A DNA stretch of 64,000 nt, taken from positions 186,001 to 250,000 of the forward strand of contig JALMLS010000461.1 in the NCBI GenBank assembly GCA_038496445.1. Reading direction: 5' to 3'. Both the position numbers and the translations under genes were made by a program. Below, piece by piece: positions 13,284 to 19,615 of this stretch (its first letter is position 1; every line of letters starts with the position of its first letter). This DNA is from Trichosphaerium sp. ATCC 40318. Its lineage: Eukaryota > Protista > Tubulinea. The notes beneath the pieces were generated by a model. The model was not told where the DNA came from and did no database searches. It worked only from the letters and a program-made list of their open reading frames with translations.

Positions 13284-13825
13284 GGTTCCACTTTTACTGT
13301 GAAATGTACTGATAAAGGAATAGTTGCTATAAACCGTAAATTTACGACTATTATACCGTGTGTCTCAAGGGTGTATATAACTTTCGAATATCCGTGCAAG
13401 TGGTCAAAATCTGTCTGTTTTTAGAAAATATAAATCATTTCAAAATCATGAGTTTTCACAAACACCAACCTCCATAATGTGGTCTAACTACGCTCCAAGT
13501 GATGTAGTACTTACACTTGACTGCATATGGGTCTTCCAGATGAATAATTGAACTTTGAAGTAAATACAATTAACTGTGTAAGAAGGTTTTACCTAGGTAC
13601 TTACAAACGCGTGTAATATCCGATCCGTCAACAGTTTTGCTGTTGAGTCATTTTAGGACTTTTACAGATTTTTGACAAAAATGCGTTCCACATCTACTTT
13701 CCGTTTTAATAACATTTCGAAAATCAAACCAGGGCATTAACAAACCGCAAGCAAGATATTGGAGAAGGGAATCGTACTTGCGTTGGTGGTTACACGAAGT
13801 CAACTCCGGTCTTTTTGGACATGCA

Positions 13826-16800
13826 ATGAGTAGGAAGCAACAGCCCTCCGTTAACGCGTACACGTTCTTGAACGAGACCAGGGAAAAATTGAGGGAAATA
13901 TCTCCTCAAGCGGTGCCACAAAACCGAACTGGTCAAAAACGACGCCGCGAGCCAGTTGAGCCAGATGCTAGATACCAGCAACTAGAGCAACAACTTCTCC
14001 GCTTAAATACACGTTTGCATCAATTAGAATCAATAGGGAATGGTGTTACCGCTAATGCGAATAGAAACGTACCTGAAGCAAGGTACCAACGATCAAATCT
14101 TTTTTGTTTGAAAAAAATTATTTAGCCGTTTGTAGGCAATATCAGCACCTAGCAAAAGCTGAGGCAGTAGTAAGTCAATTATTGCTCGAGAAAAAGTCGT
14201 TAGAACAAAAAGTTCAAGAACTCGTAGCAGAACGTCATCACTTGCGTAACGTGGTACGAGAAATTGTTTATTAACAAACAAATTATGCATAAATCGTATT
14301 TATTCAATACTGCTGTTGTACCTGGCCTAAAACCACTACAGCTACAGAATAAAAAAGCTAGAACAGCTCAACAACACAGAGGAGGCGGAAGACCACGTGC
14401 AGGACAGCAAGGTACGAAAATAAATAAAAAACGAGGAGAATCGCTACAAAAACTTTCTACGATGCAACCAGATTTTTTGAAGGGTGTTTCAACGTATAAA
14501 TTAGACCGGCGCTTCTATTTTTATTTTTTTTGAATCTTTTTAATTTTGCTTAGATGGTTCATCAAATGAAGGAATGCAACCTCCTGTGTACGTTGATTTA
14601 TTTTATTTCTCGAAATTAACGACATAATGATGTTTTTTTTGCGGTTTCATCGTTTTTCACATTTGTTTTCTACGCTCTTTTGTACCTGCGTTTTGAAGCC
14701 AATGCTTACTTTCGTGATAGCCGTGGGCCTCGTGTTCGCTACCCAAAGGGTTATAACCCTACTAAGAGGCGTTTTTCAGTCAGTAGCGAGTCGTTTTGTC
14801 CAGAAAGCTTTGTACACGTGGAACGTAAAGTTATAAAAAAGCCAGACGAAGTTCGAAAGCAAATACAAGCTGGTTTGATGGAGAATGTTCTTTTCAATCG
14901 CTTGCATGATACACAAATACAAGAAGTAGTTGATGCGATGCGTAGCGTGAAATTAAAGCCAGATGAAGTTGTTATTAAAGAGGGTACATAGACAACTCTT
15001 TTATATCGTTCTCTCTGTAGTATGTTCAAGTATTCTTATATATGGTGTAGGCACTTCTGGTGATGATATGTATGTCATCGATGAAGGAACAGTGGCTGTT
15101 CTCTATTCAGGTAAGTAAAAAAATATCATAACTTTTTGGCTGTTTTATGAAAAACGTGATTAAAAGCAAAATGTCAATTTTTGGCATCTTGTTGTTTTTT
15201 TTGTTTCCTTAAATATTTTTTAGAGGAACAAGTAGCCGAGTTGGGTCCTGGACGCGCGTTTGGTGAATTGGCGCTTATGTACAATTGTCCTAGAACTGCA
15301 ACAATCAAGGTACGATAATTTTGTATTTTTTGGATGCTTGTGACATAACTTGTGGTTGTTAGGCTATTACAGATTGTCAATTATGGGCTTTAGATAGAGG
15401 TACATTTAGACGTATAATTATGGAAGCATCCATCCGTAGACGACTTCAGTATGAGTCTTTCTTGTGCAAAGTACCTTTATTTGGTAAGCTCTAATTAACT
15501 CCTTTGTACACTCATCTCATATGTTAATATAGCTTCTCTATTGCCTTATGAGAGATCTAAAGTGGCTGACGCATTAGAAGCAGCACATTTTAAAGCGGTA
15601 TGTCATTGATACGCGACATAGTTTGCATTTTTTTGCAATTCCGACGCCTAATTTCCAAAAAAGGGTCAAGTCATTTTGGAGGAAGGTGCACAGGATAACG
15701 GCACTTTTTACATTGTAGAGAAAGGTCAAGTTATTTGTACAAAGAAACCGCCTAAAGAAGGTGTTGAACCAGCAGAGTCTCTACGTTTGGAAAGTGGTAC
15801 GTATCATATTAACAAAACTCTGCTGTGATTTCCTTGATTGTTATTAAATTGTTGCTCAGGTGGTTACTTTGGCGAATTAGCGCTTCTTACGAATAATCCT
15901 CGACAAGCTACTGTTACAGCAGTGAGTGATGTGGAGTGTTTATGCATTGCAAGGTATTAAAAGATGTTTTTTGAAATCAAGAAGCTTACTCTGATTGTTT
16001 AGAAAGCACTTTAATATGGTTATGGGTCCTGCTGTTGATATCTTAAAGCGTAATATGACAACATATAAAACATATGAAGAACTTGTTAAAGGCGCTGGTG
16101 GTGCTTTAGGTGAGATCGAAGCAATGGAAATTGAACCAGGTACCTTTTTTTGAAGAAAAATAAAAAAATTCTTATTGTTTGCGAAAAACCCCTCTGAGTC
16201 TGACTTTCTTCCAATTTCTTAGTTGATAGAAAAACTACATTGAAGAACTTGCTTAACAGTGAGGTGGAGTACACAGAGTGCTTGAATAAGATCGTAGATG
16301 TACGTTTTTTTTCATTTTTTATTTGTTGTATGATTAATTTCTTTTGTGTAGGGTTATATGGAAGCTATGGAGCAACGTAATGATTTAAAGATTTCAGTGC
16401 AAGAATCAGCAATATTATTTGCAAACGTTAAAGATATTCTTAACATCCATGATGCTCTGGTATTGTCTTGATTCTTATTTCTCTTTTTTTCTTTTTTTCG
16501 AAAAATACTTGTATTAAAACACATGCCATTTATTTGCTTCTGCTGCTTTTTGCTAACTTTTTTGTAGCTCCACGAATTTGAAAAATGCGCTCTTAATCCT
16601 GAACTCTCGATTGGTCCTCTGTTTACTCATTTGGTACGTTATACTTTTGCTATAGAGACATTACTACTTCACTGTATAATAATTATTAATTTTTTTTTAC
16701 AATTTAGGCTGAAGGTTTGAGGATATATAACGATTTTGTATCGCATTACTTCGCCAGTAAAATTGTGCTTGGAAAGAGCAAAAGTTTGCCATCATTCAAC

Positions 16801-17714
16801 AAATTTTTAAAGGTACGTGTCACGTTCTTTAGTGAGAACAAGAAAGTTTAGAAAATTTTTCTTTCACGTGAGTGTTCTTCGTTTGTCTTATATTTTCTTC
16901 GACAGGATGTACAAAGTAGCGCTTTGGTTGCTGGTGTTGAACTCGAAGACCTATTAGAAACAGTTTTCATGCGTGTAGGTGCCTATGTCAAACACATTAA
17001 GGTTCGTCCCATCTTTTCTTTGTTTTTTCTTGATTTCTAGTATCGTATTCTTACTTTTGTCTTTCGTCTCTTATGTGATTAATTAACCCTTCGCTTAGAA
17101 TTTGATGGAAACAACACATGAGGATCATATAGATGCAATGCTATTACCAAGATCAATGGAAAAAATCAAACAAGTCGACATTTCAATAAATCAATGCAAA
17201 CTTGTTGCAGAGACAGTATACAAGGCTCAAAAGACTATCTCTGGCGAATTCCAGGTAACTTTAAATTGTACCCTTCTTTATGTACAAAGTACTAAACGAT
17301 CTATTACTTCTAGAACCTAGTTGTACCAGGTCGTACACTTTTAAGAAGAGGTGATTTAGAAGATGTTCTTAGCAAGATTGTAATTCATTGCTTCTTGTTT
17401 AATGATATTATTGTTCTTTGTAAGCCTATTCCTATTGAGAAGGATGAGGTTAAACTGGTATATAATGGTATCATTAACCTATCACGTACGTTCTTGCACT
17501 CAAAAACGCCAGACATTGTCCAAGAAAACCAGAAGCGACTAGGAGTTTTTTCTTATTTTTTGTTTTAGAGTCGAAAGTTGAAGAAACAGATGAAGGATTT
17601 TGTGTTTCTTACAAGACTGATCAAGGCAAGGAACAGAAGTTTATTGGTAAAACGCCCCATAAGGATTGGTTTGAGGATTTAAAGTCCGCTATTGGTAGCA
17701 TAGGAAATGCTTGA
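13826..17714 (+). CDS. Fusion protein: coiled coil + PKA regulatory subunit-like module (inhibitor site, two cNMP-binding domains) + RhoGEF DH-PH
   Basis: KRRFSVSSE; [15 protein letters not shown]; [15 protein letters not shown]; no stop before intron 16140-16222; then [42 protein letters not shown] (DH) and [12 protein letters not shown]...[12 protein letters not shown]...WFEDLKSAI (PH); TGA 17712-17714. Confidence 0.85.
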
Positions 17715-18472
17715 AAGGTGTTGGAGTTCAAACGCATAAAAAAAGAAAAAAAAAAAAAAAAGAAAGACAAACTCTAATTAATACGAAGCCTTTCTACAAC
17801 ATTAGAGACCCTTTTTGGTTGCCCTTTACTTGTCCTTGTAAATAAATCATGACGTAAATCATTTAAAAGGTGTACAAGATCTTTGTTTGAGAAGAAACTG
17901 TCCACGCTTTCAGAGTTACCTTTTTTAAAGTGACTTGACAAAAATAGAGTGATTGAGGCCTTGTGCTTGCATGAACAAATGATACGTTCTGGATTCTCAT
18001 GTATAATAGCCAAAAGGCCGATAGGTAATGGGAATCCACAATACACAGGTGGCCATGAGAGCACCGAGAACACCACAACTTTGTTTGGTTTTTACTTTTC
18101 GCATTTTTCAAAAAAAAATATTGTGGGTTATATCATTATCGAACTATTGCTATTCCAACAGAAAATGTTCTTTTTAAGAAAACACAAGCAATTGTATTAT
18201 TAGGTAAATGGTTTGACAAACACCAAATCCAATGCCATTTCTATATTCAGTGAACAATGTGCGGTCAACACAATTTTGTTGTTTTATTAATAGTGAATTA
18301 CATCTTTTTGTATGTACGTATTTGTAGACCTTTCACTTCATTCTGATAAATGACCACGTGCTGGAAGTTTAAAAGACTGAAAAAGTTTATAACATTGTTG
18401 TGGTACACGACCAGTAAGCTCAAATTAAAACTTATGATTTTATTTGTTTTTGAACTGGTATGAGCTAGAAGT

Positions 18473-19615
18473 TTATAAATTCACACGTGTTCCAATCAGT
18501 GCTTTAGCCCCTTCTTCTGTTACCCGAGTGTTGTAAACTGAAACGTAACTTGAGCCCAAAAGTGCCTTAATGCCTTCATCTGTCACTGAAGTACCTGCAA
18601 GGTAAATAGTATCAACTCCAGCAAGCGCTTTAACTCCTTCATCTGTAACAACAGTACCTATAAGATTTATATTATGTACCCCAGCAAGTGCTTTAACTCC
18701 TTCATCTGTTACATCTGTGTTTTGTAAATAAATCATGTGCACACCTGCCAATGATTGGATGCCTTCATCTGCTACTGACGTGTTGTTAAGGTCAATAGTA
18801 TGAACGCCAGCAAGTGCCTTAATGCCTTCATCTGTGATTGAAGTGTGACCAAGGTAAATAGTATGAACACCTTTAAGCCATTTAATGCCTTCATCTGATA
18901 CTGAAGTACGAGCAATGTCGATATTGTGAACTCCAGTCAATACTTTAATGGATTCATCTGTTACTGAAGTCTGACGAAGATTAATTTTATAAACACCTTT
19001 GAGTGCTTTGACACCTTCATCTGTAACAGAAGTACCCCATAGATCTATAGTATGTACTCCAGCAAGCGCTTTAACACCTTCATTCGTTACTGAAGTATTG
19101 TTAAGATGTATAGTGTGAACACCAGCAAGAGCCTTAATGCCTTCATCTGTAACTGAAGTGAAACCAAGGTTTATAGTATGTACTCCAGCAAGTGCTTTCA
19201 CACCTTCATCTGTTAGAGTGTTACATAAAACAAGGTCAATTGTATGAACCCCTGCGAGTGCTTTAATGCCTTCATCTGTTACTGAAGTATCATTATGAAG
19301 GTAAATAGCTTGAACCCCCGCAAATCTTTTGACAATATTGTCATCAAAGCAACCACCAGTAAGTACAATTGTAGTGTGTCTGAGAATGCCCTGGTGTTGT
19401 AGAACTGATTCTGCTTGACTTACGGTTGTAATGGTGATAGAATCGTAGCCAATAATATCGTGGACGATAGATGCAAGGAAATGGCAAGTCTGGCAGGCTG
19501 CAAATTGCGATTTGGTTGTTTGGCTTAATATCCGTGCTAATATCTCTGTAGGTAGCTGTAGTAACCACGTACTGGTGGTGTCATCGAGTTTAATGCGTCC
19601 TGAGGAAGAAAGCAT
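18473..19615 (-). CDS. F-box-like/LRR protein, paralog 2 (intronless)
   Basis: LLQLPTEILARIL...CQTCHFL plus about 12 TSVTDEGxKALAGVHTIxL repeats. Confidence 0.88.
   Translation of the reverse strand: MLSSSGRIKLDDTTSTWLLQLPTEILARILSQTTKSQFAACQTCHFLASIVHDIIGYDSITITTVSQAESVLQHQGILRHTTIVLTGGCFDDNIVKRFAGVQAIYLHNDTSVTDEGIKALAGVHTIDLVLCNTLTDEGVKALAGVHTINLGFTSVTDEGIKALAGVHTIHLNNTSVTNEGVKALAGVHTIDLWGTSVTDEGVKALKGVYKINLRQTSVTDESIKVLTGVHNIDIARTSVSDEGIKWLKGVHTIYLGHTSITDEGIKALAGVHTIDLNNTSVADEGIQSLAGVHMIYLQNTDVTDEGVKALAGVHNINLIGTVVTDEGVKALAGVDTIYLAGTSVTDEGIKALLGSSYVSVYNTRVTEEGAKALIGTRVNL

Follow-up and report, generated by a model that had tools for sequence, protein, structure and literature searches.

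A PKA regulatory-subunit-like core joined to a Dbl-type RhoGEF module in a single amoebozoan protein

Main finding

Here we present a gene of the amoeba Trichosphaerium sp. ATCC 40318 in which the core of a cAMP-dependent protein kinase (PKA) regulatory (R) subunit is joined, in one reading frame, to the Dbl homology and pleckstrin homology (DH-PH) domains of a Dbl-type Rho guanine nucleotide exchange factor (RhoGEF). The gene lies on the forward strand at 13826-17714 of the window, by which we mean the whole 64,000-nt stretch of contig JALMLS010000461.1 that was analysed (positions 186,001 to 250,000; assembly GCA_038496445.1). By its architecture and a tree of R halves, it is a member of a conserved, uncharacterised fusion family of Amoebozoa. 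We consider it fairly probable, from the residues that are kept, that the product is a RhoGEF responsive to cAMP and able to dock the PKA catalytic subunit (PKA-C), with a short, presumably flexible linker between its R core and the DH-PH module. Such an architecture is already on record, although neither its spread over the Amoebozoa nor the intactness of its inhibitor site seems to have been reported. What is added here is a verified gene model, the family-wide distribution of the fusion and a residue-level case for two functional halves.

Results

A single spliced gene encodes both halves

The host region is intron-rich eukaryotic DNA (~37% G+C), and three-frame translation yields a chain of short open segments. 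We derived a gene model by a frame-aware search for GT..AG introns, and then compared it with transcript contigs from four public runs (three studies) over the region 13700-17800. The model comprises 20 exons and 19 GT..AG introns, starts with the ATG at 13826, stops with the TGA at 17712-17714 and encodes 787 amino acids plus the stop. All 19 introns, including the one at the joint between the halves (16140-16222), are spliced out in transcript contigs from the three studies. Indeed, one contig of X1 (2398 nt) and one of X4 (2504 nt) each cover 13817/13831-17731 with every predicted intron gone. Of the X1 contig 2376 nt align, which is the sum of the model exons counted from 13831 and 17 nt of 3' untranslated region, and the model is therefore correct to the base. 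Likewise, the contig stretch between exons 12 and 18 measures 452 nt, which is the sum of exons 13-17. A 34-nt micro-exon (14554-14587) is supported by the transcript joints 14409>14552 and 14587>14721, which rule out an alternative model without it (model B), and the transcripts also rule out an acceptor for intron 2 at 14347, placing it at 14341 instead. Two variants from other strains, 15264 T>C and 15273 G>A, both fall on synonymous third positions inside the first phosphate-binding cassette.

At the joint itself, exon 12 finishes with the residues EIEP at 16139 and is followed by an 83-nt phase-1 GT..AG intron, and the junction that skips these 83 nt is present in all four runs. A preliminary description of this DNA, made from the letters alone, had predicted the intron at this place and had proposed a transcript check across 16139/16223, with a single chain on one mRNA as the expected outcome; the contigs, which span the whole coding region and join all 20 exons, bear out each of these points, and the same design is conserved in relatives. 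The same description had the R half running without a stop in the DNA, which is wrong: that half is split by 11 introns, all before 16140, and its frame is continuous only after splicing.

Adjacent R-subunit and RhoGEF genes could in principle have been merged by read-through or by chimeric assembly. The contigs do not reveal transcript ends, and a contig lying across two genes would not by itself prove one transcript. However, the junction is a canonical intron spliced in frame in three studies with neither a stop nor a start signal at the joint, which leaves little room for two separate genes. Moreover, the fusion is found again in five or more named genera of Amoebozoa and, in the closest full-length relative (P0199, described below), it is an uninterrupted open reading frame (ORF) in genomic DNA. 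An artefact of this kind is thus effectively refuted, and we conclude that this is one expressed gene with one mRNA and one ORF.

Two further features of the transcripts were seen. A small X3 contig (15062-15251) keeps intron 6 and carries a 2-nt deletion at 15123, and may represent retained-intron RNA, DNA or a strain difference. An A-rich tract (17732-17770) begins ~20 nt past the stop codon, and because the contigs end at 17731, a polyadenylation site is inseparable from the genomic A run.

The N-terminal half resembles a complete PKA regulatory-subunit core

For the window gene, Pfam was tested exon by exon, and the further Pfam, PDB and fold tests of the DH-PH half, with part of those of the R half, were made with relatives that are 33-56% identical to it. 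The cyclic nucleotide-binding (cNMP) family PF00027 matches both of the single exons that bear a phosphate-binding cassette, with E-values of 6e-5 (domain A) and 1.1e-7 (domain B, exon 11). The RRFS inhibitor site (14767-14778) and the two cNMP domains lie where the preliminary description had put them. The R half is ~46-50% identical to canonical R subunits, and local BLAST gave 46% over about 285-300 residues to those of Phytophthora and Actinomortierella. P0199 scores better against PKA RI-beta and RI-alpha (1e-82) than against cGMP-dependent protein kinase (PKG, 5e-56), and the model of its R half aligns to cAMP-bound RI-alpha with a template modelling (TM) score of 0.78 versus 0.43 for the holoenzyme form.

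The residues on which R-subunit function depends are in place. The site KRRFSV aligns with the RRxSV of RIIalpha, RIIbeta and the Phytophthora and Piromyces R subunits, and the R, R, S, V/I, E and S of RRxS[V/I]..ES are invariant in seven fusion proteins. Both cassettes keep Gly-Glu...Arg-x-Ala, and the capping residues are present as the Trp of LWALDR and the Tyr of KRNxxxY (here KRNMTTY). In its Ser at the P-site, its tandem cyclic nucleotide-binding domains (CNB-A and CNB-B) and its intact cassettes and caps, the protein is thus like canonical R subunits of type II, fungal Bcy1-type and oomycete origin. Those proteins end ~10-25 residues past KRNxxxY, whereas the window protein continues with ~320 residues of DH-PH and lacks a dimerisation/docking (D/D) domain of the RIIa type. 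The R-like half is most likely a complete PKA R-subunit core with both cNMP domains, by their residues, competent to bind cAMP.

In place of the D/D domain, the heptad pattern of the sequence indicates that a coiled coil precedes the R core, as the preliminary description had surmised. The D/D family PF02197 has no Pfam match in exon 1 nor in any fusion relative, and the helical pattern of the N-terminus is kept in an alignment of seven members, as is, in family alignments, the YPKGY motif of the linker that follows it. The Dictyostelium R subunit is likewise not known to have a D/D domain, so such a domain is not universal among R subunits.

Epac and GbpD carry their cNMP domains N-terminal to the exchange domain. 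The order is the same here and, with no D/D domain, the protein could be a sensor of the Epac type, in which the tandem cNMP domains regulate DH-PH in cis, no holoenzyme with PKA-C is formed and RRFS is a mere phosphorylation site. The amoebozoan Physarum polycephalum has a separate likely R subunit in addition to its fusion (see below), and such a fusion need not, then, act as one. However, the R core stays ~46-50% identical to distant canonical R subunits and scores far better against PKA R than against PKG. Furthermore, no family member departs from RRxS[V/I]..ES or from its flanks, a constancy that would be unexpected had kinase docking been lost. As the inhibitor site has no role in cAMP binding, its invariance argues for continued contact with the active site of the kinase and disfavours a pure cAMP sensor, which we regard as unlikely without dismissing it.

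The C-terminal half is a divergent Dbl-type DH-PH module

Residues 479-787 of the window protein match the DH-PH region of P0199 in BLASTP with an E-value of 8e-43 (33% identity over 284 residues). P0199 in turn is recognised as a RhoGEF by Pfam (PF00621, E 2.4e-27) and matches ECT2 at 7e-17, and the DH-PH regions of NET1 and P-Rex1 were also matched in sequence. Compared directly with vertebrate ARHGEF10L, the window DH-PH scores 39.9 bits. When the DH-PH region of P0199 was used as a query, the search returned its own cluster and ARHGEF10L alone, the word index being too coarse for a divergent DH domain. A single window exon reached only E 0.11 against PF00621, one exon being too short for detection of a DH domain by Pfam, and exon 19 alone gave weak matches to the PH families SOS1_NGEF_PH (E 0.0049) and PH_13 (E 0.009).

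Structure prediction agrees with these assignments. The AlphaFold model of the P0199 DH-PH region (pLDDT 89, pTM 0.84) aligns only to DH-PH tandems, over ~320-345 columns, among them those of NET1, P-Rex1, Ephexin4 and intersectin. The PH region of the window protein aligns with the beta-sandwich and C-terminal helix of this model. By alignment, the window DH domain keeps Glu493 of conserved region 1 (CR1), Arg621 and Tyr625 of CR3 and Asn661 of alpha6, but the Pro and Gln of CR3 are replaced (see Discussion). No match to RasGEF or REM was found in the window exons or in any relative, and RhoGEF was the sole catalytic domain found. A DH followed by a PH domain, the order first read from the letters, therefore holds on the combined evidence of family BLASTP, alignments and the Pfam and model matches of relatives. 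The DH-PH half is, by these comparisons, a real Dbl-type module, for which exchange on a Rho-family GTPase is predicted. At the start of its DH domain there is also a second basophilic-kinase consensus of the form [RK][RK]x[ST], RKTT (residues 482-485, 16228-16239), which is not conserved in P0199.

The fusion recurs across Amoebozoa

We found the family by an exhaustive search with exon 5 and two word-index searches, and assigned domains by Pfam. The exon 5 search gave a best match of 53%, with none identical to the window protein. The arrangement of two cNMP domains followed by RhoGEF occurs in Eumycetozoa (Ceratiomyxa fruticulosa and Clastostelium recurvatum, EukProt), in Tubulinea (Echinamoeba exundans, Difflugia compressa and Arcella intermedia, the last with entries UniRef100_A0A6B2L2C3 and A0A6B2L149) and in ~10 environmental sequences, including P0199/P0087, P0086, P0042 and P0009. 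Pfam detects the RhoGEF domain in twelve or more members, and a fragment from Nematostelium gracile groups with the fusions. A further sequence, P0003, was considered as a stand-alone R subunit and set aside, because the family motif is present and the sequence continues up to the edge of its 1174-nt contig; most likely it is a fusion fragment.

Seven members have in common a conserved helical N-terminus, the pattern YPxGY..RRxS[V/I]..ES, the two cassettes and the first part of the DH domain. The other amoebozoan fusions are like the window protein in their coiled-coil N-terminus, inhibitor motif, paired cNMP domains, short linker and DH domain, with PH where complete. They differ from it in being 30-39% identical overall, several being truncated transcript models and some differing at the DH Asn. 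P0199, the closest full-length relative, has 867 residues and is 56% identical to the window protein in the R half and 33% in DH-PH. It is an uninterrupted 2604-nt ORF on four metagenome contigs (L001:3001-5604, also L002-L004), and so confirms the fusion independently of our splicing model. These contigs, from a JGI metagenome, have 42% G+C, and the neighbouring genes, UDPGP and D-Tyr-tRNA deacylase, lie ~100-130 nt away on both strands; the source genome is very compact and apparently intron-poor.

In a quick IQ-TREE analysis of the R half (58 rows, a sample without stand-alone amoebozoan R subunits), all fusions and probable fragments formed one group (SH-aLRT 86), apart from the opisthokont, oomycete and other R subunits, and the window protein fell in a 99* subclade with P0199 and the Echinamoeba and Arcellinida fusions. 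No stand-alone amoebozoan R subunit, such as Dictyostelium PkaR, was among the best 120 matches, and the tree, made without one, does not bear on the R lineage from which the fusion came.

PKA-R-like modules of other protists (P0021, P0006, P0008, P0025, P0031, P0090, P0098) were also met in unusual settings. These include proteins in which R-like units follow one another in tandem, from three up to six or more, as in a protein of 1049 residues from Diphylleia rotans and another of 3779 residues, and fusions to EF-hands or GST domains.

Earlier records of the architecture

The preliminary description knew of no fusion of an R subunit to DH-PH. In fact, section 11.2 of the supplement to Schaap et al. 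2016 (PMC4758236) lists Phypo_04156 of Physarum polycephalum as a 'PKA-R related protein with additional RhoGEF domain', and the Arcella intermedia entries were already in UniProt. A check of the domain architecture, which that description had recommended, thus gives the design in many amoebae, and the design was, in a narrow sense, already catalogued. Phypo_04156 is listed as a novel arrangement and is not known to have been studied functionally, and Physarum is also credited there with a separate likely PKA-R, Phypo_08741 (PMC4758236). Like the window protein, Phypo_04156 is an amoebozoan protein combining PKA-R-like tandem cNMP domains with RhoGEF, and its orthology is inferred from architecture and taxon alone; the paper mentions no inhibitor site, PH domain or coiled coil (PMC4758236).

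Elsewhere, the family has passed under names no more specific than 'cyclic nucleotide-binding domain-containing protein' or 'cAMP-dependent protein kinase regulator', both Arcella entries in UniProt carrying the former. Our literature searches found no functional study of a cNMP/PKA-R-RhoGEF fusion, and a RhoGEF-linked class is absent from the CNB classification of Kannan et al. 2007.

Layout of the gene and its neighbour

The features of the coding region are collected in Table 1.

Table 1. Exons and protein features of the fusion gene (window coordinates).
Feature	Position	Strand	Details and basis
Whole coding region, exons 1-7	13826-14082, 14136-14253, 14342-14411, 14554-14587, 14721-14983, 15051-15110, 15224-15309	+	Splice model, transcript contigs
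Whole coding region, exons 8-14	15363-15483, 15533-15597, 15664-15796, 15860-15953, 16003-16139, 16223-16299, 16352-16459	+	Splice model, transcript contigs
Whole coding region, exons 15-20	16568-16633, 16708-16812, 16906-17001, 17099-17254, 17314-17485, 17569-17714	+	Splice model, transcript contigs
N-terminal region, aa 1-127	13826..14347	+	Two heptad-patterned helices, aa 48-70 and 88-127, read from sequence
Basic Gly/Gln-rich linker, aa 128-170	14348..14751	+	Contains micro-exon 14554-14587; family motif YPKGY just before inhibitor site
Inhibitor/substrate site KRRFSV, aa 175-180	14764..14781	+	RRFS = aa 176-179, 14767-14778; type-II-like, Ser at P-site
cNMP-binding domain A, aa 212-329	14875..15461	+	Phosphate-binding cassette 15259-15309; PF00027 on single exon, alignment to canonical R
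cNMP-binding domain B, aa 333-461	15471..16084	+	Cassette 15868-15918; C-terminal ILKRNxxxY lid; PF00027, alignment
19-residue linker joining both halves, aa 462-480	16085..16224	+	Interrupted by phase-1 intron 16140-16222
DH (RhoGEF) domain, aa 481-682	16225..17254	+	Six exons; Glu493 16261-16263, Arg621 16972-16974, Asn661 17189-17191
PH domain, aa 683-787	17314..17711	+	Directly after DH; weak exon-19 Pfam matches, alignment to P0199 model

On the opposite strand, ~760 nt downstream and tail-to-tail with the fusion gene, lies an intronless ORF of 380 residues (18473-19615) that encodes an F-box and, after it, LRR_6 repeats, ~13 in number and nearly identical, that follow the pattern TSVTDEGIKALAGVHTIDL (in Pfam, LRR_6 5e-25 and F-box-like 1.5e-4).

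Discussion

Proposed function

Known systems that couple cyclic nucleotides to exchange factors differ from this protein in several respects. Epac1/2 and Dictyostelium GbpC/GbpD likewise carry cNMP domains beside an exchange domain in a single chain. However, theirs is a CDC25/RasGEF domain acting on Rap or Ras, a PKA inhibitor site is lacking and the cNMP domains lie outside the PKA-R subfamily. In P-Rex1 and AKAP-Lbc (AKAP13), as here, a PKA R subunit is physically coupled to DH-PH, and P-Rex1 ranks with the best matches to the fusion-family DH-PH in both sequence and fold. These two bind R non-covalently, through PDZ domains or through an amphipathic helix that needs the D/D domain, whereas the window protein is one polypeptide without a D/D domain. 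P-Rex1 is a non-canonical A-kinase anchoring protein (AKAP); PKA-C inhibits it, while RI, depending on cAMP, activates it, and AKAP-Lbc combines Rho-GEF activity with the anchoring of PKA (review PMC9361040).

Our proposal of a cAMP-responsive RhoGEF that docks PKA-C builds on what we observed of the gene structure, the single mRNA, the identity of the domains, the conservation of residues and the distribution of the family. At low cAMP, the R-like half would dock and inhibit PKA-C via RRFS and domain A, and a PKA holoenzyme would thereby be placed on a Rho/Rac exchange factor. Binding of cAMP to both domains would free PKA-C beside the GEF and its substrates, and the R module, freed or rearranged, may alter the access to, or the activity of, the adjacent DH-PH. 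A coupling of PKA release to Rho/Rac control is plausible, and the whole would be an in-cis counterpart of the in-trans partnerships between R subunit and RhoGEF in animals exemplified by P-Rex1 and AKAP-Lbc.

Several points weigh against this proposal. The binding of cAMP and of PKA-C, the GEF activity and the coupling between them are all inferred. The structural and Pfam tests of DH-PH used relatives in place of the spliced window protein. Between the halves lies a short linker that is predicted to be flexible or disordered (its equivalent in the closest relative is modelled with low pLDDT), and a two-half model of a relative reached a pTM of 0.57, its inter-domain arrangement not being confident; because of both, a direct allosteric link is unsupported. 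The closer fit of the modelled R half of the relative to cAMP-bound RI-alpha than to the holoenzyme form (0.78 and 0.43) also speaks against a rigid allosteric link. Within the DH domain, the CR3 motif P-x-Q-R reads T-V-F-M-R, with Pro replaced by Val and Gln by Met, which marks it as divergent, and the conserved Asn varies among relatives, being Asp in P0199. As CR3 is degenerate and the Asn variable, some members may be atypical in GEF activity or specificity, or may have lost it. The proposal also presupposes a PKA-C gene in this genome, which may in addition encode a separate conventional R subunit, such as Physarum has beside its fusion according to the supplementary listing (PMC4758236).

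The state of CR3 and of the conserved Asn bears on a further reading, one in which the protein is an anchored R subunit with a built-in AKAP, its DH-PH being a non-catalytic targeting or scaffold module that binds a Rho-GTPase or the membrane. PH domains and coiled coils often localise proteins, and both are found here. However, the window protein keeps Glu493, Arg621 and Asn661, and Pfam detects the DH domain in a dozen or more members, with the domain modelled at a pLDDT above 90. In addition, NET1, which is an active GEF, likewise lacks the Gln of P-x-Q-R in our alignment. We therefore judge a purely anchoring role to be improbable, more so than the Epac-like sensor, and retain a PKA-C-docking exchange factor as the preferred account of the protein.

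A bolder version of this account can be held only tentatively. The fusion may be an ancient single-chain node of Amoebozoa, older than the split between Tubulinea and Evosea, in which one cAMP-binding event both frees PKA-C at the site of Rho/Rac activation and switches the GEF. If so, it would be a natural 'Rosetta stone', marking the partnership of R subunit and RhoGEF that animals have in trans as a deep and recurrent solution, and the first cyclic-nucleotide-gated exchange factor for Rho-family GTPases.

Significance

cAMP/PKA and Rho-family GTPases jointly steer cell migration, and in animals the link between them consists of non-covalent scaffolds whose logic is debated. A natural fusion hard-wires the two partners, and provides a test case for whether an R subunit can gate DH-PH directly. 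It also lets one ask whether occupancy by the kinase and GEF activity exclude each other. Should the proposed function hold, the family would add a Rho-directed member to the few cyclic-nucleotide-regulated exchange factors, namely Epac, PDZ-GEF and GbpC/D. For the amoebae themselves, the fusion bears on the way in which cyclic-nucleotide signals are linked to the actin cytoskeleton of amoeboid cells.

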